Assembly: GCA_002269645.1 (NCBI GenBank)
Contig: NIVC01001703.1
Location: 1-64,000 of the forward strand
Length of the DNA: 64,000 nucleotides
From: Macrostomum lignano
Lineage: Eukaryota
Reading direction: 5' to 3'
The notes under the pieces are model-generated. The model was given only the letters and a program-made list of their open reading frames with translations. It did no database searches and had not been told where the DNA came from. The translations under genes and the position numbers were made by a program. Of the stretch, positions 251 through 25,494 are shown one piece after another. The stretch's first letter is position 1. Every line of letters begins with the position of its first letter.

Positions 251-3200
251 AAGCTCAAAACGGTCTCAGCCAGATTGACGAGACGCGCCGAGAAAGTCGA
301 AGTGATGTCTGAAGAGCTCGAGAAGGACAAGAAGAAGGTGGCGGAGTTCCAGCGTCAGTGCGAGGAGTTCCTTGTCATCAATTGTGCAGCAGAAAGCGCG
401 AAGCCGACGACCAGCAGAAGCAGGTGGCGCAGACCAAAGAGCGAATCTCCGTGGACGAAGCCAAGTGTCTCAACATGAAGGAGCTGGCCGAGGCCGACCT
501 TCAAGAGGCGATGCCAGCCCTGGAGGCCGCAGTGAAAGCCCTGGAGGCTCTTAACAAGAACGACATCACTGAGATCAAGTCCTACGGCAAGCCGCCCTAC
601 CTTGTCCAGAAGGTCATGGAGGCCGTCATGATTCTGCGCGGCGCCGACACGAGCTGGGAGACTGCCAACGTCACCTGGGAGAGCAGAACTTCATCGGCCA
701 GCTGGTCGACTTCAAGAAGGACAACATCTCCGACCGAGTGCTGAAGAAGATCGGGCAGTACTGCTCGCAGGACGACTTCCAGCCTGAAGTGGTTGGCAAA
801 GTGTCTTCAGCGGCCAAGAGCCTCTGCATGTGGTGCGCGCCATGGAGGTGTACGGCAGGATCTACCGGGTCGTGGAGCCGAAGCGGCAGCGACTTCAGCA
901 AGCTGAGGCGGTCCTGCAGGAGAAGCAGGCTCAGCTGCGCGAGGCCGAGGAGAAGCTTGCAGCTGTCGAGGCCAAGATGAAGGAGCTGCAGGATCAGTAC
1001 AACGGCAAGATGGAAGAGAAGGAGAACCTGCGAAGAAAAGCGGAGCACACGGAGAAAATGCTGGACCGAGCCAATCAACTGGTGGACGGTCTGGCTGGCG
1101 AGAAGGTTCGCTGGGAGCAGTCGGTGGAAACCATGGAGAAGCAGATGGAGCTGCTGCCCGGTGACTGTCTCGTTGCTTCGGCTTGCTTGTCCTACCTGGG
1201 TCCGTTCCTCAGCAACTACCGAGACGAGATGAACCTGAAGTGGATCGAGTTCGTCAAGTCGGAGGCGATCCCCTACTCGCCGGATTTTAAATTCACCGAG
1301 TTCCTGTCCAATCCGACCCTCATCCGCGACTGGAACATCTGGGGCCTGCCGTCGGACAGCTTCTCCGTTGAGAATGGCGTCATCGTGACCAGGGGCTCCC
1401 GGTGGCCGCTCATGATTGACCCGCAGGTGAGCTTGCAAGTTTTTCTAGCTTGTACAATATTAATTGAACAGTTTAAAATCGATTTCTGGAATTCAGCTCA
1501 TGCACAACTCGGATGCGAGTGCACGCGCTAGTGTAGCAATAGACTGGGAGACCAAACAATATTGATTTCAAGGCTCATAGGGGAGTTGCTGAAATACTGA
1601 GCCTCAAGGCTTATGGAAAATTGCTGAGACGTCGAGGCTCATGAAGGAATTGCTGAGACGTCAAGGCTCATGGGGGGATTTCTGAGCCTTCAAGGCTCAT
1701 GGGGAGATTTCTGAGACGTCAAGGCTCATGGGGGGGATTTCTGAGACGTCAAGCCTCATAGGGGATTGCTGAAATGCTGTGGCTCATTGGGGGTTGCTCA
1801 AATGCTTTGAGCCAATGCTCAAGAAGACGTGATAACTTAGACTTGATTGCTGGCTTTCAGAGCGAATGCAGTTTTGCTTTGAAAATATTTTACGCTAAGA
1901 AAATTAACAAGGGTGACTGTACAGAAAGAATCAAAAGCAATTTGCAAACTGATTCTGAACTATCGCTCTGCAGGGCCAGGCGCAGAAGTGGATCAAGAAC
2001 ATGGAGGGCAAGGAGCTGATCATCATTGATCTGCAGCAGGCGGACTACATCCGCAAGCTGGAAGTGGCCCTGCAGTATGGCAAACCGGTGCTGCTCCAGA
2101 ACGTAGCGGAGAAGCTGGACCCCAGCCTCGACCCGGTGCTGAACAAGTCCATTGTGAAGCTGGGCGGGGCCTGGATCATCAAGCTCGGCGACAAAGAGAT
2201 CGAGTACAACTTCGACTTCCGGTTCTACATCACGACCAAGATTCCTAATCCGCACTACGCACCGGAAATCTCCACTAAGACGGCCATCACCAACTTTGCC
2301 ATCAAGGAGGACGGTTTGGAGGCTCAACTGCTGGGCATTGTGGTCGAGAAGGAGCGCGAAGAGCTCGAGAAGGAGAAGGACAGTCTAGTGATGAAGATCG
2401 CGGCCGGAAAGAAGAAGATCAAAGAGCTCGAGGACGAAATCCTTCGACTGCTGAACGAAGCGCAGGGCTCCCTGCTGGACGACGAGCAGTTGGTGAACAC
2501 GCTGCAGACGTCCAAGTCGACCTCGGCGGAGGTCACGGAGCAGCTGGCGGTGTCTGAGAAAACCGAAGCCCAGATTGACGCGGCTCGCGAGGGCTACCGA
2601 CCGTGCGCTACGCGTGCCTCCATTTTGTTCTTCGTCATGAACGACATGGGCAAGATCGACCCGATGTACCAGTTCTCGCTGGACGCCTACATCAATCTCT
2701 TCAAGCTCAGCATCGACCGCAGTCAGCGAAATCCGCGCCTCGAGGAGCGAATCAGCAACTTGAACGATCACCACACTTACGCCGTGTACAGGTACACCTG
2801 CCGCGGCCTTTTCGAGAAGCACAAGCTGCTGTTCTCCTTCCAGATGACCGCTAAGATTTTGGAAGCCTCCGGCAAGCTGAACATGGACGAATATGACTTC
2901 TTTCTTCGCGGTGGCGTCGTGTTGGACAGGGATAACCAGATGGACAACCCGGTGCCGAACTGGCTGTCCGAAACCGGCTGGGACAATATCTCCGAGCTGG
3001 ACAAGCTGGCCAATTTTCACGGGATCATCACAAGTTTCGAGCAGTACCCTCGCGACTGGCACATCTGGTACACCTCATCTGAGCCGGAGAACGCCGCTCT
3101 GCCTGGTGAATGGGACAACGCCACCAACGAGTTCCAGCGGATGCTGATCGTCCGATCTCTGCGCGAAGACCGCGTCTCATTCTGCTCGACCAGCTTCATC

Positions 3201-6200
3201 GTCAACAATCTCGGCTCGAAATTTGTCGAGCCGCCGGTGTTGGATACCAAGCAGGTTGTGGAGGAGAGCAACTGCAAGACGCCGCTGATCTTCGTGCTGA
3301 GCCCGGGCGTGGACCCGACCAACGGCCTGATGCAGCTGGCCGAGACCTTCAAGATGGCGCGCAAGTTCCAGGCCTTGTCCCTGGGTCAGGGACAGTCCCC
3401 GACGGCTACCAAGCTGATCAAGGAGGGCGTCAGTCAAGGTCACTGGGTCTTCCTGGCCAACTGCCACCTGTCCATGTCGTGGATGCCGCAGCTGGACAAG
3501 CTGATCGAGCAACTGAACTATCACGAGGTTCACCCGGATTTCCGACTCTGGCTGAGCAGCTCACCGCACCCGAACTTCCCAATCGCAATCCTGCAGGCCG
3601 GCATCAAGATGACCACCGAGCCGCCGAAAGGACTCAAGGCCAACATGAAGCGCTTGTACCACATCATCAAAGAGGAAGACTTCTCTTCGTGCAGCAAACC
3701 AGATCGCTTCAAAAAGCTGGTGTTCTCCCTCTGCTTCTTCCACTCCATCCTCATCGAGAGGCGCAAGTTCCGCATGCTCGGTTGGAACATTCTGTACGAG
3801 TTCAACGACTCCGACTTTGAGGTGTCGCTGAAGATCCTCTCCAACTACCTGGACCAGTACGACGAGACGCCTTGGGACGCGCTGAAGTTCCTCATCGCCG
3901 AGATCAACTACGGCGGTCACGTGACAGACGACTGGGACCGGCGCCTGCTGATCACCTACATCACCAACTACTTCAACGAGGACGTCATCACGACGCCATT
4001 TTATAAGTTCTCCTCTCTGCCGCACTACTACGTGCCGCGGGACGGCTCGCTAGCCTCCTACCGCGAGTACGTCAGCATGCTGCCCAACATCGACCACCCG
4101 GAGGCTTTCGGCCAGCACCCCAACGCGGACATCAGCTCGCAGATTCAGGAGACTCGCCTGTTCTTCGGCACTCTGCTCTCGTTGGTGCCGCAGGTCACCT
4201 CTGGCGGCGCGGGCGAGTCGCGCGAAGACAAAGTGCTGGAACTGGCCAGGAACATCTACAAGCAGCTGCCGGAGAACATCGACTACGAGGCAACGGCGAA
4301 GCTGATGCAGCAGGACCCCAACCCGCTGAACGTGGTGCTGCTGCAAGAGATCGAGCGTTACAACGCCCTGCTGAACTTGATCAGGAGCAACCTCACCGAC
4401 CTGGACAAGGGCATCCAGGGTCTGGTTGTGATGAGCTCCGATCTGGAGCAGATCTTCCTGGTAAGAGTTGCAGGCAGGCACTCAGACAGACACAAACCAG
4501 ACACTAAAATAGACACTAAGACAGGCGTACAGTAGCACAGATGGACTCTAAGAAAGATACGTAGACAAATAGACAGTCAGACATTCAGAGGCAGAAATTT
4601 AGACATGCGGACATTTAGACAGGCAAATATTCAGACAGGCAGACATTCAGACAGGCGGACATTTAGACAGGCAGACATTTAGACAGGCAGACATTTAGAC
4701 AGGCGGACATTTAGACAGGCAGACATTTAGACAGGCAGACAGGCAGACAGGCAGACATTTAGACAGGCAGGCATTTAGACAGGCAGACATTTAGACAGGC
4801 AAATATTCAGACAGGCAGACATTCAGAGAGGCAGACCCTCAGACAGGCAGACATTTAGACAGGCAGACATTCAGACAGGCAGACATTCAGACAGGCAGAC
4901 ATTTAGACAGACGGGCAGTAGGACAGGCAGACAATAACAGAGGAAACAGAGGAAACAGACAATAACAGAGACTTTACAGAGGAAAAAGTCGCCCATAAAA
5001 GCCGCATGTGGCTACCGATGTCCTTGCCGCCAACCCACAGGCAATCTACGACACCCGAGTGCCATCGCTCTGGGAGCGCACCTATCCATCAATGAAGCCG
5101 CTCGCCTCGTGGACTCGGGACCTGTTGAAGCGGGTGGAGCAATTCCAGGAATGGGCCACGACAACGCACCCGCCGAAGATCTACTGGATCTCCGGGTTCA
5201 GCCTGCCGACAGGCTTCCTGACGGCTGTCCAGCAGAAGTCCGCCCGGCAGAACAACGTGAGCGTCGATTCGCTCAGCTGGGAGTTCACTGTGCAGACCAT
5301 CGACGATTCCAGCATCCCCGAGGCGGCTAGAGACGGCGTCTACGTCAAGGGGCTCTACTTGGAGGGCGCCGGCTGGGACAAGAAGCAGTGCTGCCTGATC
5401 GAGGCGAACCCCATGCAGCTGGAGTGCGAGATGCCCACCATCCTGTTCAGGCCGGTGGAGAACAAGAAGAAGACGGCTAAGAGTGAGCTTCGTGCTTGAA
5501 GCAGCATTTTGATTTTGTTGGGCGATTCGATCGCCTCGGTAGTGGCGCCATTCGAGTACCAGAATTGGCGCCAAATTTAGGTCTCCTAAGAAATGGCGCC
5601 AAGCTGGGGTCTTTTTAGAAACGGCGCAAAGTTGGGGTCTCAGAAATGGTGCCAAATAGTTTTTAGTCTCCTCAGAAATGGCGCCAAGTTGGGGTCTCAG
5701 AAATGGCGCCAAGTTGTTTGGGGTCTCCTCAGAAATGGCGCCAAGTTGTTGGGGTCTCCTCAGAAATGGCGCCAAGCTGGGGTCTCAGAAATGGCGCCAA
5801 GCTGGGGTCTCAGAAATGGCGCCAAGCTGGGGTCTCAGAAATGGCGCCAAATAGTTTGTACTCTCCTCAGAAATGGCGCCAAGTTGGGGTCTCAGAAATG
5901 GCGCCAAGTTGTTTGGGGTCTCCTCAGAAATGGCGCCAAGTTGTTGGGGTCTCCTCAGAAATGGCGCCAAGCTGGGGTCTCAGAAATGGCACCAAATAGT
6001 TTGTAGTCTCCTCAGAAATAGCGCCAATTCTGGGTCTCAGAAATGGGGCCAAGTTTTTTGGGGTCTTCTCAGAAATGGCGCCAAGTTGTTTGGAGTCCCC
6101 TCAGAAATGGCGCCAAGTTGGGGTCTCAGAAATGGCGCCAAGTTGTTTGGGGTCTCCTCAGAAATAGCGCCAATTCTGGGTCTCAGAAATGGGGCCAAGT

Positions 6201-6549
6201 TTCCTCTAAGGTTGCCCTACCAATCAGAGTCAAGCGTTACTCATTACAAGCATCAAATTTAAAATAATTATTAGATTAATTACTGACAAGATTACAAACC
6301 GACTCGGCAGATACAGACGCAAATGTGCACATTTCTACTCTGAGTAGGTCAATAAGCAAGTAGCTTATATACTCGCAAACGCCTCCACCCGCAGACGTGT
6401 ACATCGCGCCGTGCTACTACTTCCCTAACCGAGCCGGAGTCAGCGGCCGGGCCTCCTACGTGGTGGCGGTGGATTTGAAGAGCGGCGAGAAGCAGCCGGA
6501 TCACTGGGTGAAGCGAGGCACCGCGCTGCTGATGAGCCTCAGCTTCTGA
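251..6549 (+). CDS. DNAH2: Axonemal dynein heavy chain, DNAH2-like; 3' part only (stalk, AAA5, AAA6, C-terminal domain). Exons 251-1426, 1974-4460, 5041-5482, 6395-6549
   Basis: Recognisable motifs: LNKNDITEIKSY, WNIWGLPSDSFSVENG, RWPLMIDPQ|GQAQKWIKNME, LSPGVDP, SLGQGQ, WVFLANCHL, FRLWLSS, YGGHVTDDWDRR, GLYLEGAGWD, DHWVKRGTALLM. GT-AG borders join in frame. About 4 single-base indels lie within the first ~850 bp. Paralogue assignment is from recalled similarity to vertebrate DNAH2. Confidence 0.92.
1575..1815. repeat. Degenerate ~28-29-bp minisatellite (ctgagacgtcaaggctcatgggggattt) in a dynein intron
   Basis: About 8 diverged tandem units visible. Confidence 0.75.
4590..4935. repeat. 16-bp minisatellite (agacaggcagacattt) in a dynein intron
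   Basis: Tandem units read directly. Confidence 0.9.
5550..6200. repeat. 25-bp minisatellite (cagaaatggcgccaagctggggtct) with longer variants, in the last dynein intron
   Basis: Tandem units read directly. Confidence 0.92.
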
Positions 6550-7271
6550 TAATTATGCTTAATAATTGTTCATTAATTTTAACTAAAATATCAACTATTT
6601 CAATGAAATTAAATACTATGACAAGCATTAGTCAAGGCTGTTTACGAAAATATAATTTTCAAGGAAATGAAAACTAAAACAATAAATCCTATAAACAAAT
6701 ATTAGCAAATATTAACAAAAATAAAAAACACCGGAAATTACAATGAACGACAATGAAACTAGTTTAAACTTTTGTACAGACAACCATAAAAAGTTAGTGC
6801 AAAAATTGACAAGAAATATTTAAAAAAACTGATTTGACATATACAGCCTTGCTTTCTGCGGCAGTTATAAGTTTAAGTGCCTTCATTTGTTTAAATGATT
6901 ATTTAAACAATGATAGAAAGACATTCCAAAGACTTTTTTAGTTGCGAAATAAAATTTAACGAAATATTTTACTTTTTACCTGCCTGTTATTTGTAAACGT
7001 GTAAATTGTATTTTGTCACAAAAAAATAAACGATTTACGGTATTAATTTCGAGAGCATCAGTTTGCTCAAAAACGTTCTGAAGATTTTTTCTATAGCTAA
7101 GTATTGCATATACAATCACGCTCCACTTTAAAATGGAGTAATTTCAATTTTTTTACGCGGGGCAGATGCGTGTTTCTCGGTGTGACTCTGTTTATTACAA
7201 AAAAACTTAAGACACTTACACGGACAATAGATTGATCAATACACGTGCCGTACATTTATTTGAAAAAAATG

Positions 7272-10200
7272 TCACTGGTTCTCCTTCACTCCGTACCAGA
7301 AGAACAGGTTGGACAGCTCGCGCCTGTTGAAATCGCACTTGTGGTGCCGCTGGCTCATGTCCTGCTGCACCAGCCTGCGGCGCTTCTCAGCTTCGCGGAA
7401 GGCCTGCAATTTGGATGGAGTTTGTTCGGGTAGATATGGGATTTGAGAATGGAAACTGAGATTCGCGTCATCCAATGTGTCAGCCCCGCGTCAGCGCCTA
7501 GCAGGCACACACTAACACAAGAGTGTACAGCGGCACTAACATTATTTATCGTTAGGATGTACACTTCACTGTGCCTTGGGGTTGACTTAATTGCACGAAC
7601 AGACCCAAGCCACGAGACATCATTAATTTGACTACAATTGGAATCGAGCTTGGGCCGCTGGCACATCAGAGCGCCGCTCCAGTTCACTAATAGGCAACGG
7701 CCTCCCCCATACCTACCTACCTACCTACCTACCTACCTACCTACCTACCTACCTACCTACCTACCTACCTATCTACCTACCTACCTACCTACCTACCTAT
7801 ACCTACCTACCTACCTACCTACCTACCTACCTATACCTACCTACCTACCTACCTACCTATACCTACCTACCTACCTACCTACCTACCTACCTATACCTAC
7901 CTACCTACCTACCTACCTATACCTACCTACCTACCTACCTACCTACCTACCTATACCTACCTACCTACCTACCTACCTACCTACCTATACCTACCTACCT
8001 ACCTACCTACCTACCTATACCTACCTACCTACCTATACCTACCTACCTACCTACCTACCTATCTACCTACCTACCTACCTACCTACCTACCTACCTACCT
8101 ACCTACCTACCTACCTACCTACCTACCTACCTACCTACCTACCTACCTACCTACCTACCTACGAAACTATGCTGATCTGCCTATCTGTTTACAGGTACCT
8201 ACCTATTTATCTAACTCATTTATTTTTCTAGCCGCCTACCCTAAGACTGACAAACAATAAATGCGCTTGACCCAAGCAATTATCGAAAATTCCTGGAACC
8301 CTTGGGTTTGATTCATGCGACACGCCTGCATGACTGGGTTCTTGTGGCATTCCCGCATTCAAATGAAAGCCGTATCTCAGAAACTGCAGACCTCAAAGTC
8401 CCACAGTGAAGAGGCGAACACGGCCTGGGTTCGCATCGCGGAGCACAGCAGCGCCGACCGATGGTAGACATGAAACTGGAGGAACGGCAGGAACCTCGCC
8501 GACTGCACCTGGATGAACACGTAGCCAACGTAAATTGGCATGCTCAGATAGGCGATTAGCGTGAATGACGTCACCACCAGGCTGATCATCTCGCACTGGA
8601 TTGGCTTCTGCATCTCTAGCAGGCAAGTGATGCTGGCCACCACCGATATGCGATTGGGGCAGCGCAGCTGCTCAACCCGAACCTGCGATCGCGAAGGTTG
8701 AAATGGTAAAGTGGCCCAGCAACTGAGGATCTGGGAGACTGGCATGGCAACTGAGAATGTGGGAGTCTGGCACGGCAACTGAGGATTGGGATGGAAGGCT
8801 GGCCCAGCAACTGAGATCTGGGAGGCTGGCCCAACAACTGGGGATTGGGAGGCTGGCACAGCAACTGAGGATCTGGGAGGCTAGCCATACAACTGATGAG
8901 GATTTGGGAGGCTGGCCCAACAACTGAGGATCTAGGAGGCTGGCTCAGGAATTGATGAGGATCTGGGAGGCTGGCTCAGCAATTGAGGATCTGAGAGGCT
9001 GGCCCAGCAACTAAGCATTGGAAGGCTGGCCCAGCAACTGGGGATCTGGGAGGCTGGCCCAGCAACTGAGTATCTGAAAGGCTGGCCCAGCAACTGGGGA
9101 TCTGGGATGCTGGCCCAGCAACTGAGGATCTGGGAGGCTGGCCCATCAACTGAGGATCTGGGAGGTTGGTGGCCCAGCAACTGGGGATCTGGGAGGCTGG
9201 CTCAGCAACTGAGGATCTGGGAGGCTGGCCCAGCAACTGAGGATTAGGAGTCTGGCCCAGCAACTCCGTATAGTTACACAAGCGTCAATAAACACCTTTC
9301 CGGTAGACGTTCTCAATACTAGCGGCTTCTTAGCGTTCACTGATCTGCGTGACCGTCGCAGAAGCACCGGTCTCAACCGGTTTGGTTTATCGGGAGCTGC
9401 TGGACTATCGGAGGCATTACTTATATGCGGATAGTAACAGATGGGGCAGGAGGCTGCGTTCCAAGTAGACTGCCAGCAATCCCCTACGTCTTTCTCAGTG
9501 CCAACGTCGGTATGATCAAAGCGACTGTCGGCATGATCAAAGCGACTGTCGGAATGATCAAAGCGACTGTCGGAAGAATCAAAGCGACTGTCGGAAGGAT
9601 CAAAGCGACTGTCGGAATGATCAAAGCGACTGTCGGAATGATCAAAGCGACTGTCGGTATGATCAAAGCGACTGTCGGAATGATCAAAGCGACTGTCGGC
9701 ATGATCAAAGCGACTGTCGGAATGATCAAAGCGACTGTCGGTATGATCAAAGCGACTGTCGGAAGAATCAAAGCGACTGTCGGAAGGATCAAAGCGACTG
9801 TCGGAATGATCAAAGCGACTGTCGGAAGGATCAAAGCGACTGTCGGAATGATCAAAGCGACTGTCGGCATGATCAAAGCGACTGTCGGTATGATCAAAGC
9901 GACTGTCGGAAGGATCAAAGCGACTGTCGGAATGATCAAAGCGACTGTCGGCATGATCAAAGCGACTGTCGGTATGATCAAAGCGACTGTTGGAATGATC
10001 AAAGCGACTGTTGGAATGATCAAAGCGACTGTCGGAATGATCAAAGTGACTGTCGGAATGATCAAAGCGACTGTCGGCATCATCAAAGCGAAATCGGAGG
10101 TGACGGTGACGGTTGCGACGTTGCAAGAGGCGACGGCGGCAGCGCCTGCAAAGTCCGAGCCGATCCCGAGCTGTACCTGGAGGGCACCGGTCATCATAAA

Positions 10201-12173
10201 TCAGCTGCAAGGAGTGCAGATTCATCAACTGATTAGCAGCATTTATCGCAGCTTTTGAGCTGTGTCGCACAACCAGACAGGTCAGCGAAAGATCTTGATA
10301 GATATTTCCGCAGTGGTTGAGCAGCCGCGGTCGCAGATGCACCAGTAGGCGGTCTCCAATTCTGCGAATTGTTGATGAAAATACAAGACCCCCTCTGTAG
10401 CTGGCACCCCCCTCTGTAGCTGGCACCCCCTCTGTAGCTGGCACCCCCCTCTGTAGCTGGCACCCCCTCTGTAGCTGGCACCCCCTTCTGTAGCTGGCAC
10501 CCCCTCTGTAGCTGGCACCCCCTCTGTAGCTGGCACCCCCCTCTGTAGCTGGCACCCCCTTCTGTAGCTGGCACCCCCTCTGTAGCTGGCACCCCCCTCT
10601 GTAGCTGGCACCCCCCTCTGTAGCTGGCACCCCCCTCTGTAGCTGGCACCCCCTCTGTAGCTGGCACCCCCTCTGTAGCTGGCACCCCCTCTGTAGCTGG
10701 CACCCCCTCTGTAGCTGGCACCCCCTCTGTAGCTGGCACCCCCCCTCTGTAGCTGGCACCCCCTCTGTAGCTGGCACCCCCTCTGTAGCTGGCACCCCCT
10801 CTGTAGCTGGCACCCCCTCTGTAGCTGGCACCCCCTCTGTAGCTGGCACCCCCTCTGTAGCTGGCACCCCCTCTGTAGCTGGCACCCCCTTCTGTAGCTG
10901 GCACCCCCTCTGTAGCTGGCACCCCCTCTGTAGCTGGCACCCCCTTCTGTAGCTGGCACCCCCTCTGTAGCTGGCACCCCCTCTGTAGCTGGCACCCCCT
11001 CTGTAGCTGGCACCCCCTCTGTAGCTGGCACCCCCCTCTGTAGCTGGCGCCCCCCTCTGTAGCTGGCGCCCCCTCTGTAGCTGGCGCCCCCCTCTGTAGC
11101 TGGAACGCCCCTCTGTAGCTGGCGCCCCCTCTGTAGCTGGCACCCCCTCTGTAGCTGGCACCCCCTCTGTAGCTGGCACCCCCTCTGTAGCTGGCACCCC
11201 CTCTGTAGCTGGCACCCCCTCTGTAGCTGGAACGCCCCTCTGTAGCTGGCGCCCCCCTCTGTAGCTGGCACCCCCCTCTGTAGCTGGCACCCCCTCTGTA
11301 GCTGGCACCCCCTCTGTAGCTGGCACCCCCTCTGTAGCTGGCACCCCCCTCTGTAGCTGGCACCCCCTCTGTAGCTGGCACCCCCTCTGTAGCTGGCGCC
11401 CCCTCGGTAGCTGTAGAATAACCTGTAATAACTAATTGCCTCACCTGTAATAACTAATCGCCTCACCTGTAATAACTAATCGCATCACCTGTAATAACTA
11501 ATTGCCTCACCTGTAATAACTAATCGCCTCACCTGTAATAACTAATCGCCTCACCTGTAATAACTAATCGCCTCACCTGTAATAACTAATTGCCTCACCT
11601 GTAATAACTAATCGCCTCACCTGTAATAACTAATTGCCTCACCTGTAATAACTAATTGCCTCACCTGTAATAACTAATTGCCTCACCTGTAATAACTAAT
11701 TGCCTCACCTGTAATAACTAATCGCCTCACCTGTAATAACTAATTGCCTCACCTGTAATAACTAATCGCCTCACCTGTAATAACTATTTGCCTCACCTGT
11801 AATAACTAATTGCCTCACCTGTAATAACTAATTGCCTCACCTGTAATAACTAATTGCCTCACCTGTAGTAAGCGGCACAGCCGTTAAACAATCGGCCAGC
11901 CCAGTATTTCAGCCTCTTTCTTCGCCTGCGACCGCCATCAAACCAGACCACATTGTCTGTCGAGTTTCCGCAAGCCGGCAGAGCCAGCCACGAGTCTGTC
12001 TGAAGGCCCGGCCAGTGCCAGTGGCGCACCGTGGTGACACTTCGGCTTGGCAATGACCGGCAATCGTGAATGATTGTAAATAGAAACAGAAATGAGTAGA
12101 TTAGCAATCCTGAATTATAACAATAAATACGCATTAATGAAATTTTCAACTTCTTTGCGTCGTCAGAGTATAA
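7272..12173 (-). CDS. Uncharacterised predicted membrane protein (copy-1 model). Exons A1 12173-11863, B1 10361-9296, C 8682-8392, D 7403-7272 (stop). 5' end unresolved
   Basis: All borders are GT-AG and the phases match (A out 2 / B in 2; B out 0 / C in 0; C out 0 / D in 0). There are no internal stops, and AATAAA lies at 7260-7255 after the stop. Four of 5 substitutions between exon-B copies are synonymous in this frame. Hydrophobic segments GLLIYSFLFLFTII and ISLVVTSFTLIAYLSMPIYVGYVFIQV. Confidence 0.7.
7500..7708 (-). mobile_element. Dispersed repeat, probable degenerate tRNA-derived SINE (family 2, copy alpha)
   Basis: Homologous to 51465-51695 and 44088-44208. The minus strand starts with a G-run and has a B-box-like agctcgattcc. 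Confidence 0.55.
7708..8163. repeat. (TACC)n microsatellite with TATACC interruptions
   Basis: Read directly. Confidence 0.97.
8710..9270. repeat. 28-bp minisatellite (ggcccagcaactgaggatctgggaggct); further copies at 12405-13020 and 15436-16055
   Basis: Tandem units read directly; lies in the intron between exons B and C. Confidence 0.92.
9508..10085. repeat. 21-bp VNTR (gatcaaagcgactgtcggaat): 27 units here, 14 units at ~13262-13565 and ~16295-16600; probably coding (DSRFDHS)n on the minus strand
   Basis: Units counted from the translation. The exon B length difference is 273 bp = 13 x 21. Confidence 0.9.
10388..11415. repeat. 19-20-bp minisatellite (ctctgtagctggcaccccc); copies at 13870-14440 and 16905-17295
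   Basis: Read directly; intronic between exons A and B. Confidence 0.95.
11420..11862. repeat. 22-bp minisatellite (cacctgtaataactaattgcct), ~20 units; copies at 14450-14893 and 17305-17592
   Basis: Read directly; begins exactly at the exon A donor. Confidence 0.95.
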
Positions 12174-13049
12174 CTACAAAAGACATCAACGACTTGTTTA
12201 TCAGTATTTAATTTTACCGGCCGATATGAAATCAGCAATGTAAGTGCTTGATTTCGGGCCATAGACAGTGCGGATTCCCGGTTATTCATGAAAACAAAGT
12301 TTTTTATCTAAAAATATGGTTCTATTCATATTTTGTTCGAGCGAGCCTATGAGGTTAACTAGTGTGAAATGGATAAGCTATAGTGTGAAAGGATAAGCTA
12401 ATGTGGATTGGGAGGCTGGCTCAGCAACTGAGGATCTGGGAGGCTGGCCTAGCAACTGAGGATCTGAGAGGCTGGCCTAGCAACTGATGGGGATCTGGGA
12501 GACTGGCCCAGAAACTGAGGATCTGTGAGTCTGGCTCAGCAACTGAGGATCTGGGAGGCTGGCCCAGCAACTGAGGATTGGGAGGCTGGCTCAGCAACTG
12601 AGGATCTGGGAGACTGGCTCAGCAACTGAGGATCTGGGAGGCTGGCCCAGCAACTGAGGATCTGGGAGGATGGCCCAGCAACTGAGGATCTGGGAAGCTG
12701 GCCCAGCAACTGAGGATCTGGGAGGCTGGCCCAGCAACTGAGGATCTGTGAGTCTGGCTCAGCAACTGAGGATCTGGGAGGCTGGCCCAGCAACTGAGGA
12801 TCTGTGAGTCTGGCTCAGCAACTGAGGATCTGGGAGGCTGGCCCAGCAACTGAGGATCTGGGAGGCTGGCCCAGCAACTGAGGATCTGGGAGGCTCGCCC
12901 AGCAACTGGGGATCTGGGAGGCTGGCCCAGCAACTGGGGATCTGGGAGGCTGGCCCAGCAACTGAGGATCTGGGATGCTGGCACAGCAACTGAGGATCTG
13001 GGAGGCTGGCCCAGCAACTCCGTATAGTTACACAAGCGTCAATAAACAC

Positions 13050-15204
13050 CTTTCCGGTAGACGTTCTCAATACTAGCGGCTTCTTAGCGTTCACTGATCT
13101 GCGTGACCGTCGCAGAAGCACCGGTCTCAACCGGTTTGGTTTATCGGGAGCTGCTGGACTATCGGAGGCATTACTTATATGCGGATAGTAACAGATGGGG
13201 CAGGAGGCTGCGTTCCAAGTAGACTGCCAGCAATCCCCTACGTCTTCCTCAGTGCCAACGTCGGTATGATCAAAGCGACTGTCGGAATGATCAAAGCGAC
13301 TGTCGGCATGATCAAAGCGACTGTCGGTATGATCAAAGCGACTCTCGGCATGATCAAAGCGACTGTCGGAAGGATCAAAGCGACTGTCGGAAGGATCAAA
13401 GCGACTGTCGGAATGATCAAAGCGACTGTCGGAAGGATCAAAGCGACTGTCGGAATGATCAAAGCGACTGTCGGAAGGATCAAAGCGACTGTCGGAATGA
13501 TCAAAGCGACTGTCGGAATGATCAAAGCGACTGTCGGAATGATCAAAGCGACTGTCGGCATCATCAAAGCGAAATCGGAGGTGACGGTGACGGTTGCGAC
13601 GTTGCAAGAGGCGACGGCGGCAGCGCCTGCAAAGTCCAAGCCGATCCCGAGCTGTACCTGGAGGGCACCGGTCATCATAAATCAGCTGCAAGGAGTGCAG
13701 ATTCATCAACTGATTAGCAGCATTTATCGCAGCTTTTGAGCTGTGTCGCACAACCAGACAGGTCAGCGAAAGATCTTGATAGATATTTCCGCAGTGGTTG
13801 AGCAGCCGCGGTCGCAGATGTACCAATAGGCGGTCTCCGATTCTGCGAATTGTTGATGAAAATACAAGACGTCCCCCTCTGTAGCTGGCACCCCCCTCTG
13901 TAGCTGGCACCCCCCTCTGTAGCTGGCACCCCCCTCTGTAGCTGGCACCCCCCTCTGTAGCTGGCACCCCCTCTGTAGCTGGCACCCCCCCTCTGTAGCT
14001 GGCGCCCCCCTCTGTAGCTGGCACCCCCTCTGTAGCTGGCACCCCCCTCTGTAGCTGGCGCCCCCCTCTGTAGCTGGCACCCCCTCTGTAGCTGGCACCC
14101 CCTCTGTAGCTGGCGCCCCCCTCTGTAGCTGGCGCCCCCCTCTGTAGCTGGCACCCCCCTCTGTAGCTGGCTACCCCCTCTGTAGCTGGCGCCCCCCTCT
14201 GTAGCTGGAACGCCCCTCTGTAGCTGGCGCCCCCCTCTGTAGCTGGCACCCCCTCTGTAGCTGGCACCCTCTCTGTAGCTGGCACCCCCTCTGTAGCTGG
14301 CACCCCCTCTGTAGCTGGCACCCCCTCTGTAGCTGGCACCCCCTCTGTAGCTGGCACCCCCTCTGTAGCTGGCACCCCCCTCTGTAGCTGGCACCCCCTC
14401 TGTAGCTGGCACCCCCTCTGTAGCTGGCGCCCCCTCGGTAGCTGTAGAATAACCTGTAATAACTAATTGCCTCACCTGTAATAACTAATCGCCTCACCTG
14501 TAATAACTAATCGCATCACCTGTAATAACTAATTGCCTCACCTGTAATAACTAATCGCCTCACCTGTAATAACTAATCGCCTCACCTGTAATAACTAATC
14601 GCCTCACCTGTAATAACTAATTGCCTCACCTGTAATAACTAATCGCCTCACCTGTAATAACTAATTGCCTCACCTGTAATAACTAATTGCCTCACCTGTA
14701 ATAACTAATTGCCTCACCTGTAATAACTAATTGCCTCACCTGTAATAACTAATCGCCTCACCTGTAATAACTAATTGCCTCACCTGTAATAACTAATCGC
14801 CTCACCTGTAATAACTATTTGCCTCACCTGTAATAACTAATTGCCTCACCTGTAATAACTAATTGCCTCACCTGTAATAACTAATTGCCTCACCTGTAGT
14901 AAGCGGCACAGCCGTTAAACAATCGGCCAGCCCAGTATTTCAGCCTCTTTCTTCGCCTGCGACCGCCATCAAACCAGACCACATTGTCTGTCGAGTTTCC
15001 GCAAGCCGGCAGAGCCAGCCACGAGTCTGTCTGAAGGCCCGGCCAGTGCCAGTGGCGCACCGTGGTGACACTTCGGCTTGGCAATGACCGGCAATCGTGA
15101 ATGATTGTAAATAGAAACAGAAATGAGTAGATTAGCAATCCTGAATTATAACAATAAATACGCATTAATGAAATTTTCAACTTCTTTGCGTCGTCAGAGT
15201 ATAA
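13050..15204 (-). CDS. Duplicated exon cassette, copy 2 (A2 15204-14894, B2 13842-13050) of the uncharacterised gene
   Basis: Same splice sites and open frame as copy 1; exon B = 793 nt. Confidence 0.55.
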
Positions 15205-16082
15205 CTACAAAAGACATCAACGACTTGTTTATCAGTATTTAATTTTACCGGCCGATATGAAATCAGCAATGTAAGTGCTTGATTTCGGGCCATAGACAGT
15301 GCGGATTCCCGGTTATTCATGAAAACAAAGTTTTTTATCTAAAAATATGGTTCTATTCATATTTTGTTCGAGCGAGCCTATGAGGTTAACTAGTGTGAAA
15401 TGGATAAGCTATAGTGTGAAAGGATAAGCTAATGTGGATTGGGAGGCTGGCTCAGCAACTGAGGATCTGGGAGGCTGGCCTAGCAACTGAGGATCTGAGA
15501 GGCTGGCCTAGCAACTGATGGGGATCTGGGAGACTGGCCCAGAAACTGAGGATCTGTGAGTCTGGCTCAGCAACTGAGGATCTGGGAGGCTGGCCCAGCA
15601 ACTGAGGATTGGGAGGCTGGCTCAGCAACTGAGGATCTGGGAGACTGGCTCAGCAACTGAGGATCTGGGAGGCTGGCCCAGCAACTGAGGATCTGGGAGG
15701 ATGGCCCAGCAACTGAGGATCTGGGAAGCTGGCCCAGCAACTGAGGATCTGGGAGGCTGGCCCAGCAACTGAGGATCTGTGAGTCTGGCTCAGCAACTGA
15801 GGATCTGGGAGGCTGGCCCAGCAACTGGGGATCTGGGAGGCTGGCCCAGCAACTGAGTATCTGAAAGGCTGGCCCAGCAACTGGGGATCTGGGATGCTGG
15901 CCCAGCAACTGAGGATCTGGGAGGCTGGCCCATCAACTGAGGATCTGGGAGGTTGGTGGCCCAGCAACTGGGGATCTGGGAGGCTGGCCCAGCAACTGAG
16001 GATCTGGGATGCTGGCACAGCAACTGAGGATTAGGAGTCTGGCCCAGCAACTCCGTATAGTTACACAAGCGTCAATAAACAC

Positions 16083-18075
16083 CTTTCCGGTAGACGTTCT
16101 CAATACTAGCGGCTTCTTAGCGTTCACTGATCTGCGTGACCGTCGCAGAAGCACCGGTCTCAACCGGTTTGGTTTATCGGGAGCTGCTGGACTATCGGAG
16201 GCATTACTTATATGCGGATAGTAACAGATGGGGCAGGAGGCTGCGTTCCAAGTAGACTGCCAGCAATCCCCTACGTCTTCCTCAGTGCCAACGTCGGTAT
16301 GATCAAAGCGACTGTCGGAATGATCAAAGCGACTGTCGGCATGATCAAAGCGACTGTCGGTATGATCAAAGCGACTCTCGGCATGATCAAAGCGACTGTC
16401 GGAAGGATCAAAGCGACTGTCGGAAGGATCAAAGCGACTGTCGGAATGATCAAAGCGACTGTCGGAAGGATCAAAGCGACTGTCGGAATGATCAAAGCGA
16501 CTGTCGGAAGGATCAAAGCGACTGTCGGAATGATCAAAGCGACTGTCGGAATGATCAAAGCGACTGTCGGAATGATCAAAGCGACTGTCGGCATCATCAA
16601 AGCGAAATCGGAGGTGACGGTGACGGTTGCGACGTTGCAAGAGGCGACGGCGGCAGCGCCTGCAAAGTCCAAGCCGATCCCGAGCTGTACCTGGAGGGCA
16701 CCGGTCATCATAAATCAGCTGCAAGGAGTGCAGATTCATCAACTGATTAGCAGCATTTATCGCAGCTTTTGAGCTGTGTCGCACAACCAGACAGGTCAGC
16801 GAAAGATCTTGATAGATATTTCCGCAGTGGTTGAGCAGCCGCGGTCGCAGATGTACCAATAGGCGGTCTCCGATTCTGCGAATTGTTGATGAAAATACAA
16901 GACGTCCCCCTCTGTAGCTGGCACCCCCCTCTGTAGCTGGCACCCCCCTCTGTAGCTGGCACCCCCCTCTGTAGCTGGCACCCCCCTCTGTAGCTGGCAC
17001 CCCCTCTGTAGCTGGCACCCCCCTCTGTAGCTGGCGCCCCCCCTCTGTAGCTGGCACCCCCTCTGTAGCTGGCACCCCCCTCTGTAGCTGGCGCCCCCCT
17101 CTGTAGCTGGCACCCCCTCTGTAGCTGGCACCCCCCTCTGTAGCTGGCGCCCCCCTCTGTAGCTGGCGCCCCCCTCTGTAGCTGGCACCCCCCTCTGTAG
17201 CTGGCTACCCCCTCTGTAGCTGGCGCCCCCCTCTGTAGCTGGCACCCCCCTCTGTAGCTGGCACCCCCCTCTGTAGCTGGCGCCCCCTCGGTAGCTGTAG
17301 AATAACCTGTAATAACTAATTGCCTCACCTGTAATAACTAATCGCCTCACCTGTAATAACTAATCGCCTCACCTGTAATAACTAATTGCCTCACCTGTAA
17401 TAACTAATCGCCTCACCTGTAATAACTAATCGCCTCACCTGTAATAACTAATCGCCTCACCTGTAATAACTAATTGCCTCACCTGTAATAACTAATCGCC
17501 TCACCTGTAATAACTAATTGCCTCACCTGTAATAACTAATCGCCTCACCTGTAATAACTAATTGCCTCACCTGTAATAACTAATTGTCTCACCTGTAGTA
17601 AGCGGCACAGCCGTTAAACAATCGGCCAGCCCAGTATTTCAGCCTCTTTCTTCGCCTGCGACCGCCATCAAACCAGACCACATTGTCTGTCGAGTTTCCG
17701 CAAGCCGGCAGAGCCAGCCACGAGTCTGTCTGAAGGCCCGGCCAGTGCCAGTGGCGCACCGTGGTGACACTTCGGCTTGGCAATGACCGGCAATCGTGAA
17801 TGATTGTAAATAGAAACAGAAATGAGTAGATTAGCAATCCTGAATTATAACAATAAATACGCATTAATGAAATTTTCAACTTCTTTGCGTCGTCAGAGTA
17901 TAACTACAAAAGACATCAACGACTTGTTTATCAGTATTTAATTTTACCTGCCGATATGAAATCAGCAATGTAAGTGCTTGATTTCGGGCCATAGACAGTG
18001 CGGATTTCCGGTTATTCATGAAAGCAAAGTTTTTTTCTAAAAATATGGTTCTATTCATTTTTTGTTCGAGCGAGC
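16083..18075 (-). CDS. Duplicated exon cassette, copy 3 (candidate Y3 18075-17948, A3 17903-17593, B3 16875-16083)
   Basis: Same splice sites. A 44-nt GT-AG intron at 17947-17904 joins ...ISYRQ to LYSDDAKK in phase 0. Exon Y is open only in this copy. Confidence 0.55.
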
Positions 18076-18084
18076 CTATGAGGT

Positions 18085-19965
18085 TAACTAGTGTGAATGG
18101 ATAAGCTATAGTGTGAAAGGATAAGCTAATGTGAATGGATAAGCTATAGTGTGAAAGGATAAGCTAATGTGAATGGATAAACTAGTGTGAATGGGTAAGC
18201 TATTGTGAATTAAAAAGCTAGTGTGAATGGATAAGCTAGTGTGAATGGATAAGCTAATGTGAATGAACAAGCTACTATGAATGAACAAGCTACTGTGAAT
18301 GGATAAGCTACTGTGAATGGATAAGCTTTTGTGAATGAACAAGCTACTGTGAATGAACAAGCTACTGTGAATGAACAAGCTACTGTGAATGAACAAGCTA
18401 CTGTGAATAGATAAGCTACTGTGAATGGATAAGCTTTTGTGAATGAACAAGCTTCAGTGAATGGATAAGCTACTGTGAATGAACAAGCTACTGTGAATGA
18501 ATAAGCTATTGTGAATGAATAAGCTATTGTGAATGAATAAGCTACTGTGAATGAACAAGCTACTGTGAATGAACAAGCTACTGTGAATGAATAAGCTATT
18601 GTGAATGAATAAGCTATTGTGAATGAATAAGCTACTGTGAATGAACAAGCTACTGTGAATGAACAAGCTACTGTGAATGAATAAGCTATTGTGAAGGAAT
18701 AAGCTATTGTGAATGAATAAGCTAGCGTGAATGGAGAAGCTATAGTGTGTTAATGGATAAGCTTCTGTGAATGAACAAGCTACTGTGAAGGGATAAGCTA
18801 CTGTGAATGAACAAGCTACTGTGAATGAATAAGCTATTGTGAATGAATAAGCTATTGTGAATGAATAGCTAGCGTGAATGAATAAGCTATAGTGTTAATG
18901 GATAAGCTTCTGTGAATGAACAAGCTTCTGTGAATGGATAAGCTACTGTGAATGAATAAGCTAGCGTGAATGAATAAGCTACTGTAAATGAATAAGCTAT
19001 TGTGAATGAATAAGCTAGCGTGAATGGAGAAGCTATAGTGTTAATGGATAAGCTTCTGTGAATGAACAAGCTACTGTGAATGAATAAGCTATTGTGAATG
19101 AATAAGCTATTGTGAATGAATAGCTAGCGTGAATGGAGAAGCTATAGTGTTAATGGATAAGCTTCTGTGAATGAACAAGCTTCTGTGAATGGATAAGCTA
19201 CTGTGAATGAACAAGCTACTGTGAATGAATAAGCTATTGTGAATGAATAAGCTATTGTGAATGAATAGCTAGCGTGAATGGAGAAGCTATAGTGTTAATG
19301 GATAAGCTTCTGTGAATGAACAAGCTTCTGTGAATGGATAAGCTACTGTGAATGAATAAGCTAGCGTGAATGAATAAGCTACTGTGAATGAATAAGCTAT
19401 TGTGAATGAATAAGCTAGCGTGAATGGAGAAGCTATAGTGTTAATGGATAAGCTTCTGTGAATGAACAAGCTACTGTGAATGAATAAGCTATTGTGAATG
19501 AATAAGCTATTGTGAATGAATAGCTAGCGTGAATGGAGAAGCTATAGTGTTAATGGATAAGCTTCTGTGAATGAACAAGCTTCTGTGAATGGATAAGCTA
19601 CTGTGAATGAACAAGCTACTGTGAATGAATAAGCTATTGTGAATGAATAAGCTATTGTGAATGAATAGCTAGCGTGAATGGAGAAGCTATAGTGTTAATG
19701 GATAAGCTTCTGTGAATGAACAAGCTTCTGTGAATGGATAAGCTACTGTGAATGAATAAGCTAGCGTGAATGAATAAGCTACTGTGAATGAATAAGCTAT
19801 TGTGAATGAATAAGCTAGCGTGAATGGAGAAGCTATAGTGTTAATGGATAAGCTTCTGTGAATGAACAAGCTACTGTGAATGAACAAGCTACTATGAATG
19901 AACTATGGATAAGCTACTATGGATAAGCTTTTGTGAATGAACAAGCTACTGTGAATGAACAAGCT
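18085..19965. repeat. 18-bp minisatellite (gtgaatgaataagctact) with ~400-bp higher-order periodicity
   Basis: Read directly; marker variants recur at 400-bp spacing. Confidence 0.93.
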
Positions 19966-19981
19966 GCTGCTGAATCCATAC

Positions 19982-20148
19982 ACTGTACGCAGGTACACAT
20001 ATCACACAGGGTGCACATGAGTTGCGGTCCTGCCTTTTTCATTGTTCGAACACGACTTGTGCATTCTTGTGAATCAGTACACAAGACCCAAGCAACTTTG
20101 TTCACGTATGCAAACTGGGGTCGCACATTCGCAATGCCATTTTCGCTA
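19982..20148 (-). CDS. Candidate upstream exon X of the uncharacterised gene (SENGIANVRPQFAYVNKVAWVLCTDSQEC...CTLCDMCTCVQ)
   Basis: AG at 20150/20149, a GTATGG donor at 19981 in phase 1 matching the phase-1 acceptor of exon Y, and an open Cys-rich frame. Inference only. Confidence 0.3.
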
Positions 20149-21479: not shown

Positions 21480-21690
21480 TTTCTGGTTTGTGAATTGTCT
21501 AGCTTGTGAATTGTCTAGCTTGTGAATTGTCTAAGTTTGTGAATGGCCCGGTTTGTGAATGGCCTGGTTTGTGAATGTCCTGGTTTGTGAATGGCCTGGT
21601 TTGTGATTTATCCGGTTTGTGAATGGCCTGGTTTGTGATTTCTCTGGTTTGTGAAGATGCTGGTTTATGAGGCTTCTTGTTTATGAAGTT
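21480..21690. repeat. Short 14-16-bp degenerate repeat (tggtttgtgaatggcc)
   Basis: Read directly. Confidence 0.75.
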
Positions 21691-21814
21691 TCCAGTCTTT
21701 GCAGGCTTGCCTGAAATACGCTTTAATCAAAGATGGCATTTTGCAAAGCAGATATGTCGCACTTAAAAGCATCCGGATGAGCCACAATGTCCTCCTCTTG
21801 CACCGGACCAACTC

Positions 21815-24800
21815 TCATTTGCCCGCCGACCCCAGCAAAGTCATGTCCGAAGGCGGCGGAGGCGGCGGCTTGTCCGGCTTCTCGAGCACGATGACCCGCT
21901 TGGGGTACTGCTGCAGCTCCACGACCAGCAGCTTCAGCTGCCAGGACTTGTCCTCAGCCTGCGGCGGGGTGGGGAATGGGACCTATTTCGGAACCTGAAT
22001 CTCACTCTGAATCTATCCTAAACCCCGAATCCCATTCTGAATCTATCCTAAGCCCCGAATCTCACTCTGAATCTATCCTGAACCCCGAATCTCACTCTGG
22101 ATCTATCCTAAACCCCGAATCTCACTATGAATCTATCCTAAACCCCGAATCTCACTCTGAATCTATCCTGAACCCAGAATCTCACTCTGAATCTATCTTA
22201 AACCCTGAATCTCACTCTGAATCTATCTTAAACCCCGAATCTCACTCTGAATCTATCCTGAACCCAGAATCTCACTCTGAATCTATCCTAAACCCCGAAT
22301 CTCACTCTGAATCTATCTTAAACCCTGAATCTACGATTGTTTCAACGCTGAATATCTCACCCTGAATATATTCTCCTGAACCTAAAAACCTCAACCTGAA
22401 TCACATACTTAATATACCAAAAAATCAAATAAAGAACCTAGTCTGAACAATTAAGAATTAACCCTAAACCTAGCCTGGACCATTAACCTGAACCTAGCCT
22501 GAACCTAGTCTGAAAAATAAACACTAAATCTAGCCTGAACCATTTAACTGAACCTAGCCTGAACCATTTAACTGAACCTAGCCTGAACCTAGCCTGAGCC
22601 ATTAACCCTGAACCTAGCCTGAAAAATTATCTTTGAACCTATCCTGAACAATTAACCCTAAATCTAGCCTGAACCATTAACCTGAACCTAGACTGAACCA
22701 TTAACCTGAACCTAGCCTGAACCTAGCTTGAGCCATTAACCCTGAACCTAGCCTGAGCCATTAACCCTGAACCTAGCCTGAGCCATTAACCCTGAACCTA
22801 GCCTGAGCCATTAACCCTGAACCTAGCCTGAACAATTAATCCTGAACCTAGCCTGAACAATTAACCCTGAATCTAGCCTGAACAATTAACCCTGAACCTA
22901 GCCTGAACAATTAACCCTGAACCTAGCCTGAACAATTAACCCTGAATCTAGCCTGAACCTAGCTTGAGCCATTAACCCTGAACCTAGCCTGAGCCATTAA
23001 CCCTGAACCTAGCCTGAGCCATTAACCCTGAACCTAGCCTGAACAATTAACTTTGAACCTAGCCTGAACAATTAACCCTGAACCTAGCCTGAACAATTAA
23101 CCCTGAACCTAGCCTGAACAATTAACTTTGAACCTAGCCTGAACAATTAACCCTGAACCTAGCCTGAACAATTAACCCTGAATCTAGCCTGAACAATTAA
23201 CCCTGAACCTAGCCTGAACAATTAACCCTGAACCTAGCCTGAGCCATTAACCCTGAACCTAGCCTGAACAATTAACTTTGAACCTAGCCTGAACAATTAA
23301 CCTGAACCTAGCCTGAACCTAGCTTGAGCCATTAACCCTGAACCTAGCCTGAGCCATTAACCCTGAAACTAGCCTGAGCCATTAACCCTGAACCTAGCCT
23401 GAACAATTAACCCTGAACCTAGCCTAAAAAATTAACTTTGAACCTAGCCTGAAAAATTAACTTTGAAACTAGCCTGAACAATTAACCCTGAACCTAGCCT
23501 GAACCATTAAGCCTGAACCTAGCCTGAAGTATTCTAGTCCCCTAAAATAAAAAACGCACCTTAACTCCCTGAGCATAGACGTCGGCCCTATTAAACTGTC
23601 CAACCAGGTGAAACCTGAGCGACATCACTCGCTGCCCAGTCTCCGAGTCCAGCGACTCCTCAGAGTGAACTCGACTGCGCGACCGACGCGAGCTGCCGTC
23701 GCCGTGCGAGCGAATGGGTTCGCCCAGAGCCGCCTGGACCTGCGGATCTTGAAGGCACCTCTCGGTGGCCAGAGACTGCAGCGCTGTCGGGGACTCGCTG
23801 GAGTAGAGCTCGCGCCATAGGGCGTAGAACAGACCGCCTGTGACCAGCACGCCAGCCAGCACCACCAGAGTGTAGCCGAAGTCTTTGGATCCTTCCACAA
23901 CTGGCAGTGGATGGGGGGCATGGTGTAAATTAATGCGTAGCTACCTTGTGTAACATTTACAAGCGTCTATGGGTAATCACCAAGTGTGTCTATGGGTGAT
24001 GCACCAGGTGTGTCTATGGGTGATGCACCAGGTGTGTCTATGGGTGATGCACCAGGTGTGTCTATGGGTGATGCACCAGGTGTGTCTATGGGTGATGCAC
24101 CAGGTGTGTCTATGGGTGATGCACCAGGTGTGTCTATGGGTGATGCACCAGGTGTGTCTATGGGTGATGCACCAGGTGTGTCTATGGGTGATGCACCAAG
24201 TGTGTCTATGGGTGATGCACCAGGTGTGTCTATGGGTGATGCACCAAGTGTGTCTATGGGTGATGCACCAAGTGTGTCTATGGGTGATGCACCAAGTGTG
24301 TCTATTGGTGATGCACCAAGTGTGTCTATGGGTGATGCACCAAGAGTGTCTATTGGTGATGCTCTAAGTGTGTCTCTGCAGTCTCTACTAGTGTCTGCAT
24401 GGTGTCATCGATTAATTTCGCTACACGGATGCTTTCAAGATTGTTTATCAACTGTCAAATTTGAGTAATCTGTGAACATGGAGTTTGCAGACTTTCGCAA
24501 CTTCTGTGGGTTAGAGAGGAGGCTCAGCAGTGTTGTGGTGGGGTAGAGATGCTGGTATTTTATTTGATTCTTGAACTTTTTGGCTGATGACATACTGACA
24601 TACAAATTAATTAAAATTGATTTCAAATCACGCGTTGTTTAAGCCTGCCTTTTTCTACTGCTAAATTTGCAGACAGTACTGCATACCTTAACTAATCAAT
24701 ACGAACTACACAGTACAAGCCACCCAGTCATAGATAAGAATTATCACAAAACAGAGCTTCTGGCAAGGGTCTCCACAGAAAGAGGGCCTTCAAATCGAAC

Positions 24801-25177: not shown

Positions 25178-25349
25178 CTCAGAGAAAGATCAGTACAGAG
25201 ATAGCCAAGTGCATGCGATTGATACCATGCTAGATAGCGAGTGCCCCCCCCCCCCAAAAAAAACAGCATAGCACAAATCATGTAGCGAGAAACAGACAGT
25301 GAGTGCAGTGCACAGTGAGGCGCCTGATTCTAAGCTCTTTATCAGCCAA

Positions 25350-25400: not shown

Positions 25401-25494
25401 TAGCCTCAGCAATAGGTGAGCCGAGGCCTCTCTTTGCCAATTAAGGTCCCTCATTTAGCAACACAAAACAGACGCTAAACACAACTCAGCCAGC

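Follow-up and report, generated by a model that had tools for sequence, protein, structure and literature searches.

A four-exon gene set among minisatellites in Macrostomum lignano, with a predicted type I membrane product

Can a spliced gene be read from the short unique blocks that separate long minisatellite arrays, and if so, what does it encode? The question is raised by a 64-kb nuclear window of the free-living flatworm Macrostomum lignano, positions 1-64,000 of NIVC01001703.1, which is dense in minisatellites (77 rows in Tandem Repeats Finder, TRF). An earlier note, made from the sequence alone, had joined four minus-strand blocks between positions 12173 and 7272, here called exons A to D, into a gene for a cell-surface protein. 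We find that the four-exon protein-coding gene at this locus is real and is supported by transcripts through a sister copy elsewhere in the genome. The reading as a whole, that of a four-exon gene which is the sister of the annotated gene BOX15_Mlig009897g1, has no detectable relatives outside the species and encodes a type I product, is in our judgment probable.

Four exons and three satellite-filled introns

The four blocks join at GT-AG borders with matching phases, as had been proposed. Exon A (11863..12173; this and all other features of the gene are on the minus strand) lies between the upstream border ttttgtag and the downstream border CAG/gtgagg. It contains a 5' untranslated region of about 39 nt, starts its coding sequence (CDS) at ATG 12134 and exits in phase 2 at CAG/GTGAGG. 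Exon B (9296..10361) runs from phase 2 to phase 0 between the borders ttcgcag and AAG/gtgttt, and exon C (8392..8682), which is present in a single copy, runs from phase 0 to phase 0 between gatcgcag and GAG/gtctgc. Exon D (7272..7403, upstream border attgcag) encodes a basic, charged C-terminal tail and carries the stop codon TGA at 7274-7272; the AATAAA polyadenylation signal (7255..7260) that the note had placed behind this stop starts 12 nt past it and is conserved in the sister locus. Exons A and B also recur further upstream, and those described here form module copy 1.

Exon A from ATG 12134, together with exons B, C and D, yields an in-frame CDS of 1761 nt that encodes 586 amino acids and has one terminal stop. 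The unique coding sequence of exons A and B (750 nt) contains no stop in the predicted frame versus 13 and 11 in the other frames, and composition-preserving shuffles of it were open in 1/20000 cases, so that the exon pattern is not due to chance. The 21-nt array inside exon B is open in every frame, and its openness is therefore no indicator of coding. Every motif that had been listed for the product is present. Exon A encodes a signal-like hydrophobic segment, GLLIYSFLFLFTII, followed by a Cys/Trp-containing sequence and RRRRKR; exon B encodes CPPGTARDRLGLCRRC, an Arg-rich stretch, the DSRFDHS repeat tract, CPIC and RRSRR; and exon C encodes the sole helix of transmembrane (TM) grade in the product, MISLVVTSFTLIAYLSMPIYVGYVFI.

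The introns are occupied largely by tandem repeats. Intron 1 (10362..11862) holds a 22-nt minisatellite at 11421-11871 and an 18-nt minisatellite at 10388-11413, intron 2 (8683..9295) holds a 28-nt minisatellite at 8712-9265, and intron 3 (7404..8391) holds a (GGTA)n microsatellite at 7710-8162 on the minus strand. Within the 22-nt minisatellite (ACAGGTGAGGCAATTAGTTATT) the consensus 5' splice site CAG/GTGAGG recurs about 20 times. Use of any later donor copy would shift the frame, and read-through past the first donor meets an immediate TGA; the first donor copy of the array is the one used by the sister transcript. The (GGTA)n tract of intron 3 and the CAG-containing 28-mer of intron 2 constitute further decoy splice-site arrays.

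The sister locus and selection on the frame

The first protein search, in which the query was the spliced protein with its repeat trimmed, matched three proteins (P0001-P0003), all from M. lignano. P0001 is the GenBank entry "hypothetical protein BOX15_Mlig009897g1, partial" (assembly GCA_002269645.1, scaffold NIVC01000227.1), and it aligns with the whole of the repeat-trimmed query (100%) at an identity of 92% (E = 7.7e-292). The same gene is represented in UniProt by the models P0002 and P0003, and its UniProt models include A0A1I8IRD8. The residues at the junctions of P0001 are those predicted for the window gene: AAYYR/IGDRL at the join of A and B, TSTGK/VRVEQ at that of B and C, and WDFE/AFREA at that of C and D. 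The Mlig_3_7 annotation behind P0001 was built from StringTie/TACO genome-guided RNA-seq (RNA sequencing) assemblies and mapped de novo transcripts, its models were cut by experimental trans-splicing and poly(A) data, and its open reading frames (ORFs) were called by TransDecoder (PMC5730564). Because the transcript-derived P0001 carries the same junctions, there is independent transcript support at the sister locus, and the claim of a real, spliced and expressed orphan gene starting at ATG 12134 is thereby borne out. Judged by its sequence, the window gene is a duplicate or homeologue of BOX15_Mlig009897g1, and it is thus already known as an annotated hypothetical protein, uncharacterised and lineage-restricted. 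The description of the gene as hidden among satellites stands only in part: the gene does lie buried in satellites, a layout that is the norm in this region, but GenBank and UniProt already contain models of it, so that it cannot be called hidden.

Over more than 20 kb, the locus on NIVC01000227.1 that encodes P0001 (L001) runs collinear with the window, in reverse orientation (2043-22412 versus 28001-1 of the window), with an identity of 88-98% across the collinear stretch. This is consistent with the known redundancy of the partly duplicated M. lignano genome, of whose assembly about 180 Mb lie in blocks that are at least 95% identical (PMC5730564). Synteny is conserved: the genes upstream in L001 match DM9 and TIM21, and downstream lies a dynein heavy chain gene on the opposite strand. 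The sister gene shares with the window gene its four exons, junctions, stop, poly(A) signal, four intronic satellite families and neighbours, and the unique coding sequence of the two is 99.2% identical. Both the 22-nt and the 18-nt array of intron 1 are present in L001 with different copy numbers. Unlike the window gene, the sister gene has one A-B module instead of three and 7 DSRFDHS units instead of 27, 14 and 14, and by our count it differs in five amino acids, including one that precedes the ATG.

The divergence between the two loci is distributed as expected of a protein-coding gene. Exons A, B (unique parts), C and D differ from L001 by 10 substitutions in 1215 sites (0.8%) with no insertions or deletions (indels), whereas the adjacent unique non-coding blocks differ by 49 substitutions in 1044 sites (4.7%) with many indels, an approximately six-fold lower divergence in the exons (Fisher p = 5.5e-9). 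The unique parts of intron 3 are 3.5-12% diverged, again with many indels. Exon A differs from L001 at 1 of 311 nt, located before the ATG, and is identical in its three window copies; exon C differs at 1 of 291 nt, a synonymous change, and exon D has one non-synonymous difference. Half of the exonic changes (5 of 10) are synonymous, and the ratio of non-synonymous to synonymous substitution rates (dN/dS) is about 0.31. The four copies of exon B vary at 9 sites, and at 6 of these the change is synonymous in the predicted frame (p = 0.01 versus an expectation of 25%). The note had counted four silent changes among five exon-B substitutions, and this count holds: four leave the amino acid unchanged (att/atc, ctg/ttg, gtg/gta, ctc/ctt), and the fifth, aaa/gaa, exchanges K for E. 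The ratio of silent to non-silent changes is thus 4:1 in the predicted frame; in frames +1 and +2 it drops to 2:3 and 0:5, respectively. Owing to the youth of the copies these counts are small, but they agree with one another.

A repeat-bearing product without detectable relatives

The note had understated that the repeat tract is encoded by a minisatellite, an in-frame array with a 21-nt unit (GACAGTCGCTTTGATCATTCC, encoding DSRFDHS) that TRF places at 9506..10091 on the minus strand. Module copy 1 has 27 units, copies 2 and 3 have 14 each, and L001 has 7, always in frame. Of the differences between the units, 30 are non-synonymous and 1 is synonymous; they cluster at codons 6-7 (H/P/S and S/A/T), and the DSRFD core is invariant. 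The tract behaves as a coding variable number tandem repeat (VNTR) with freely changing length.

The hydropathy profile of the protein contains one TM-grade segment, with a Kyte-Doolittle (KD) peak of 1.84 at residues 478-496. The N-terminal hydrophobic stretch of exon A consists of a 14-residue h-region with a KD value of 1.55 after an n-region with a single Arg, and a possible signal cleavage site after CRS can be read from the sequence. By the same kind of reading, the sequence downstream of the TM helix is basic (SAR, HR, KRRR, RR) and that upstream is net acidic; the single helix thus has the more positive flank on its C-terminal side, which fits an N-out, C-in topology. The protein has 17 Cys residues, two N-x-S/T sites and two furin-type motifs, RRRRKR (69-74) and RRSRR (426-430). 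Our best reading is that the product is a type I membrane or secretory-pathway protein, its cell-surface placement being inferred from hydropathy and charge only. With module 1 joined to exons C and D, the N-terminal hydrophobic segment from ATG 12134 would direct the 586-amino acid protein into the secretory pathway, and the product would span the membrane once, in type I orientation. Its N-terminal ectodomain, rich in Cys and Arg, would be held off the membrane by the DSRFDHS spacer, which is probably disordered, acidic and His-rich and whose length would be set by the 21-bp minisatellite (7 to 27 units). The putative furin-type sites RRRRKR and RRSRR could release ectodomain fragments, and one TM helix followed by a short basic cytoplasmic tail would complete the protein.

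A two-TM version of the protein had also been offered, in which the gene runs further upstream through exons Y (17948..18075) and X (19982..20148), both on the minus strand. Both blocks have AG/GT borders, and one frame reads from them into exon A. Only module copy 3, however, keeps exon Y open; its frame is broken in copies 1 and 2 by a 1-nt insertion, and L001 has the same insertion together with a 9-nt deletion. Exon X differs from L001 by 6 substitutions, of which 5 are non-synonymous and 1 is synonymous as read from the alignment, and it lies outside the P0001 model. That model starts 9 nt upstream of the putative exon A acceptor AG (L001 10001 versus an exon start at 10010), within the supposed intron between Y and A, and the transcript is therefore not spliced from Y. 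Blocks Y and X are not part of the gene, the extended version is very improbable, and ATG 12134 is the likely start of the type I protein.

The note could assign the product to no family, and none was obtained from the Pfam, PDB or HMMER searches. Pfam, searched at E up to 10 with the two protein halves and with P0001-P0003, returned only a sub-threshold Prok-RING_4 match, and the PDB sequence search gave no match below E = 0.07. In an exhaustive HMMER search of 1.84 billion representatives, the only proteins matched outside the repeat tract among the best 150 of 1063 matches, which reach about E = 3e-7 for non-repeat matches, were two M. lignano models, P0002 and a further protein, P0004. Two repeat-tract matches inspected among those listed were unrelated repeat proteins with DSRFSIL or DARFDAV tracts. 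A word-indexed search with exons C and D alone found no protein but P0153, in which this gene is modelled with a shifted frame. By sequence comparison, then, no homologue outside M. lignano was detected in the first search, in the search with exons C and D, or among the HMMER matches listed. The gene identifier Mlig009897 was absent from the paper texts searched and from the supplements of PMC5730564 and PMC5816591, and no expression pattern was obtained; Rfam gave no match on the whole window.

Some of the existing models are themselves defective. P0004 (1817 amino acids) is a faulty model in which exons C and D are fused to an apparent antisense translation of the dynein gene, P0153 (89 amino acids) is a fragment with a shifted frame that bears the name "COX assembly mitochondrial protein", and P0003, entered as "Membrane protein UL12", loses the frame within the repeat. 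Neither of these automatic UniProt names, nor that of P0002, "G_PROTEIN_RECEP_F1_2 domain-containing protein", is backed by any test run here. The last of them would make the gene a fragment of a rhodopsin-like G protein-coupled receptor, for which the name is the sole argument. The Pfam search to E = 10 returned no receptor hit, neither a seven-TM arrangement nor a 7tm_1 domain was found, the protein has one TM-grade segment besides its N-terminal hydrophobic stretch, and, among its best 150 of 1063 matches, HMMER listed nothing outside the repeat tract other than P0002 and P0004. We give this identity next to no credence.

The predicted architecture invites comparison with several known systems. 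MUC1 is a type I membrane mucin with a coding VNTR, and membrane mucins of this type resemble the layout predicted for the product in their signal peptide, an extracellular repeat tract encoded by an in-frame minisatellite of variable copy number, a cleavage site that separates this tract from the TM helix, a single TM helix and a short cytoplasmic tail. The window repeat, however, is rich in D, S, R, F and H and not in Pro, Thr and Ser, there is no SEA domain, mucin domain or other Pfam domain, and there is no sequence similarity. Prohormone and neuropeptide precursors likewise combine a signal-like N terminus with multiple dibasic or polybasic sites and short peptides repeated in tandem. In the window protein, by contrast, there are no K/R pairs, basic cleavage sites or amidation Gly between the DSRFDHS units, and a TM helix and tail follow. 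Fungal cell-wall adhesins with coding mini- or megasatellites (PMC2566889) are another case in which an in-frame minisatellite, by expanding and contracting, changes the length of a surface protein; they belong to another kingdom, with another anchor and another repeat chemistry, and are not homologous to the window protein.

Several points weigh against the reading of the locus as the gene of a functional type I protein. The RNA support belongs to the sister copy and not directly to the window locus, the divergence is low, and the dN/dS estimate draws on 10 substitutions. The variation between repeat units is nearly all amino-acid changing, so that there is no residue constraint in the repeat. 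Topology and signal were read from hydropathy and charge, and the Arg-rich runs might just as well direct the protein to the nucleus or nucleolus. The AlphaFold2 single-sequence model of P0002 was uninformative (mean predicted local distance difference test, pLDDT, 38). Codon adaptation is also weak in the 5' part of the gene. Against a reference composed of the dynein and clathrin exons of the same window, the codon adaptation index (CAI) is 0.64 for exon C and 0.83 for exon D, with the reference genes at 0.62-0.71, versus 0.43-0.46 for exon A and the 5' and 3' parts of exon B, which are weakly above a uniform-synonymous null (z = 2.8, 3.2 and 0.7, respectively). Mixed amino-acid and codon log-odds give the same split between exons A/B and C/D, and the 5' part may accordingly be young or less constrained.

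An alternative is a locus that is transcribed and spliced but makes no functional protein, being a young ORF or a set of redundant copies, drifting in a recently duplicated genome, whose apparent conservation reflects only recent duplication or gene conversion. The absence of a homologue outside the species, of a domain and of a confident fold, the poor codon adaptation of exons A and B, the unconstrained repeat units and the extent of the assembly (some 180 Mb) that lies in near-identical duplicated blocks all agree with such a locus. Recent duplication does not readily account, however, for conservation that is specific to the exons, which are free of indels, for an excess of synonymous changes that appears in the predicted frame only, for 250 unique codons that are open where the other frames hold 11-13 stops, or for the housekeeping-like codon usage of exons C and D. 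We therefore judge a non-functional locus improbable and prefer the protein-coding reading.

Tandem modules and genomic neighbourhood

The window contains three tandem copies, in units of 2.7-3.8 kb, of a module that comprises exons A and B, the arrays of their introns and some 230 bp upstream of exon A. Module copy 2 (13050..15204, minus strand) has exon A at 15204-14894 and exon B at 13842-13050 with the same intronic arrays, and module copy 3 (16083..17903, minus strand) has exon A at 17903-17593 and exon B at 16875-16083. The copies differ in substitutions and array lengths and are therefore no trivial assembly stutter, though a mis-assembly might still underlie the triplication.

It is formally possible that transcription begins at module 3 or 2 and that each exon B donor is spliced to the next exon A acceptor, giving A3-B3-A2-B2-A1-B1-C-D with up to 1322 amino acids, in which the internal hydrophobic segments would be extra TM spans. 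The join is continuous and has no internal stop, because exon A is open in phase 0 from its first base (ttttgtag/TTATAC) and exon B ends in phase 0. Each module has the upstream sequence of about 230 bp, including the region in which the L001 model starts, and the donor of B3 would be expected to choose an acceptor close by instead of skipping 6-7 kb. The exon A acceptor, however, is a TAG (ttttggag in L001) and not the CAG enriched at M. lignano acceptors, and this AG is unused in the sister locus, whose model includes the 9 nt upstream of it. The sister locus, moreover, has only one module, and the join of B to A was seen in no database protein (best 150 of 1063 in HMMER). We regard both the longer protein and its extra TM spans as unlikely, and module 1 spliced to exons C and D remains our preferred structure. 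The spliced leader of M. lignano has ATG at its end, which brings trans-splicing to exon A into question as well; such trans-splicing is unsupported, because the L001 model extends upstream of the AG.

Upstream of module 3 lies an 18-nt minisatellite (18088-19975) of about 104 copies with a higher-order period of 400 nt, and only two 20-nt relatives of it remain upstream of modules 1 and 2 (12360-12400 and 15391-15431). This array marks one breakpoint of the module duplication, the other being in the 28-mer array. One may imagine from these arrangements a satellite-driven extension of the gene, in which older, well codon-adapted exons C and D carry a younger, poorly adapted A-B module, the minisatellite has been expanding (7 to 14 to 27 units), and the module with its promoter region has been amplified as a frame-preserving higher-order repeat. 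We regard this scenario as doubtful.

Upstream of the minus-strand gene lies a TIM21-like gene, and on its downstream side a dynein heavy-chain gene converges on it. The dynein gene contributes exons at 2001-4535 and 5008-5499 on the plus strand; the 3' dynein exons within 1-6500 (AAA_9, Dynein_heavy, AAA_lid_11 and Dynein_C) lie tail-to-tail with the orphan gene and are accompanied by satellites at 1597-1792, 4570-4933 and 5560-6201. Counterparts of the TIM21- and DM9-matching genes of L001 are placed at about 21600-26700 on the minus strand by collinearity with L001 3241-8055, among arrays of a 24-mer (23965-24375), a 25-mer (22582-23528) and a 30-mer (21997-22332); the window ORF at 24728-25177, taken alone, had no Pfam hit. 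Further along lies a clathrin heavy-chain gene (45040-63086, plus strand; Pfam Clathrin_propel and Clathrin), whose coding ORFs are separated by long minisatellite arrays built from units of 19-34 nt; one of these, at 51696-56659, consists of 145 copies of a 34-mer. Introns filled with satellites are thus a regional norm and not peculiar to the orphan gene, and simple and tandem repeats make up 15% of the M. lignano genome (PMC5730564). Two stretches of the window, 26000-31000 and 36000-38000, are AT-rich, with a GC content of 0.29-0.31 versus about 0.5 in the genic and satellite parts.

The case serves as a calibration, in that a reader with the sequence alone rebuilt a spliced gene from its unique blocks and the junctions were confirmed by an independent, transcript-based annotation. 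Splicing at this gene works although intron 1 opens with about 20 tandem consensus 5' splice sites, and the tandem triplication of a two-exon 5' module keeps the reading frame. If the satellite-driven extension were true, one locus could yield one-, two- or three-module surface proteins. The gene is one of many uncharacterised, lineage-restricted genes of M. lignano, and its coding VNTR, which differs four-fold in length between gene copies, may, like its splicing and the triplicated module, be of interest for the study of repeat-rich genomes.

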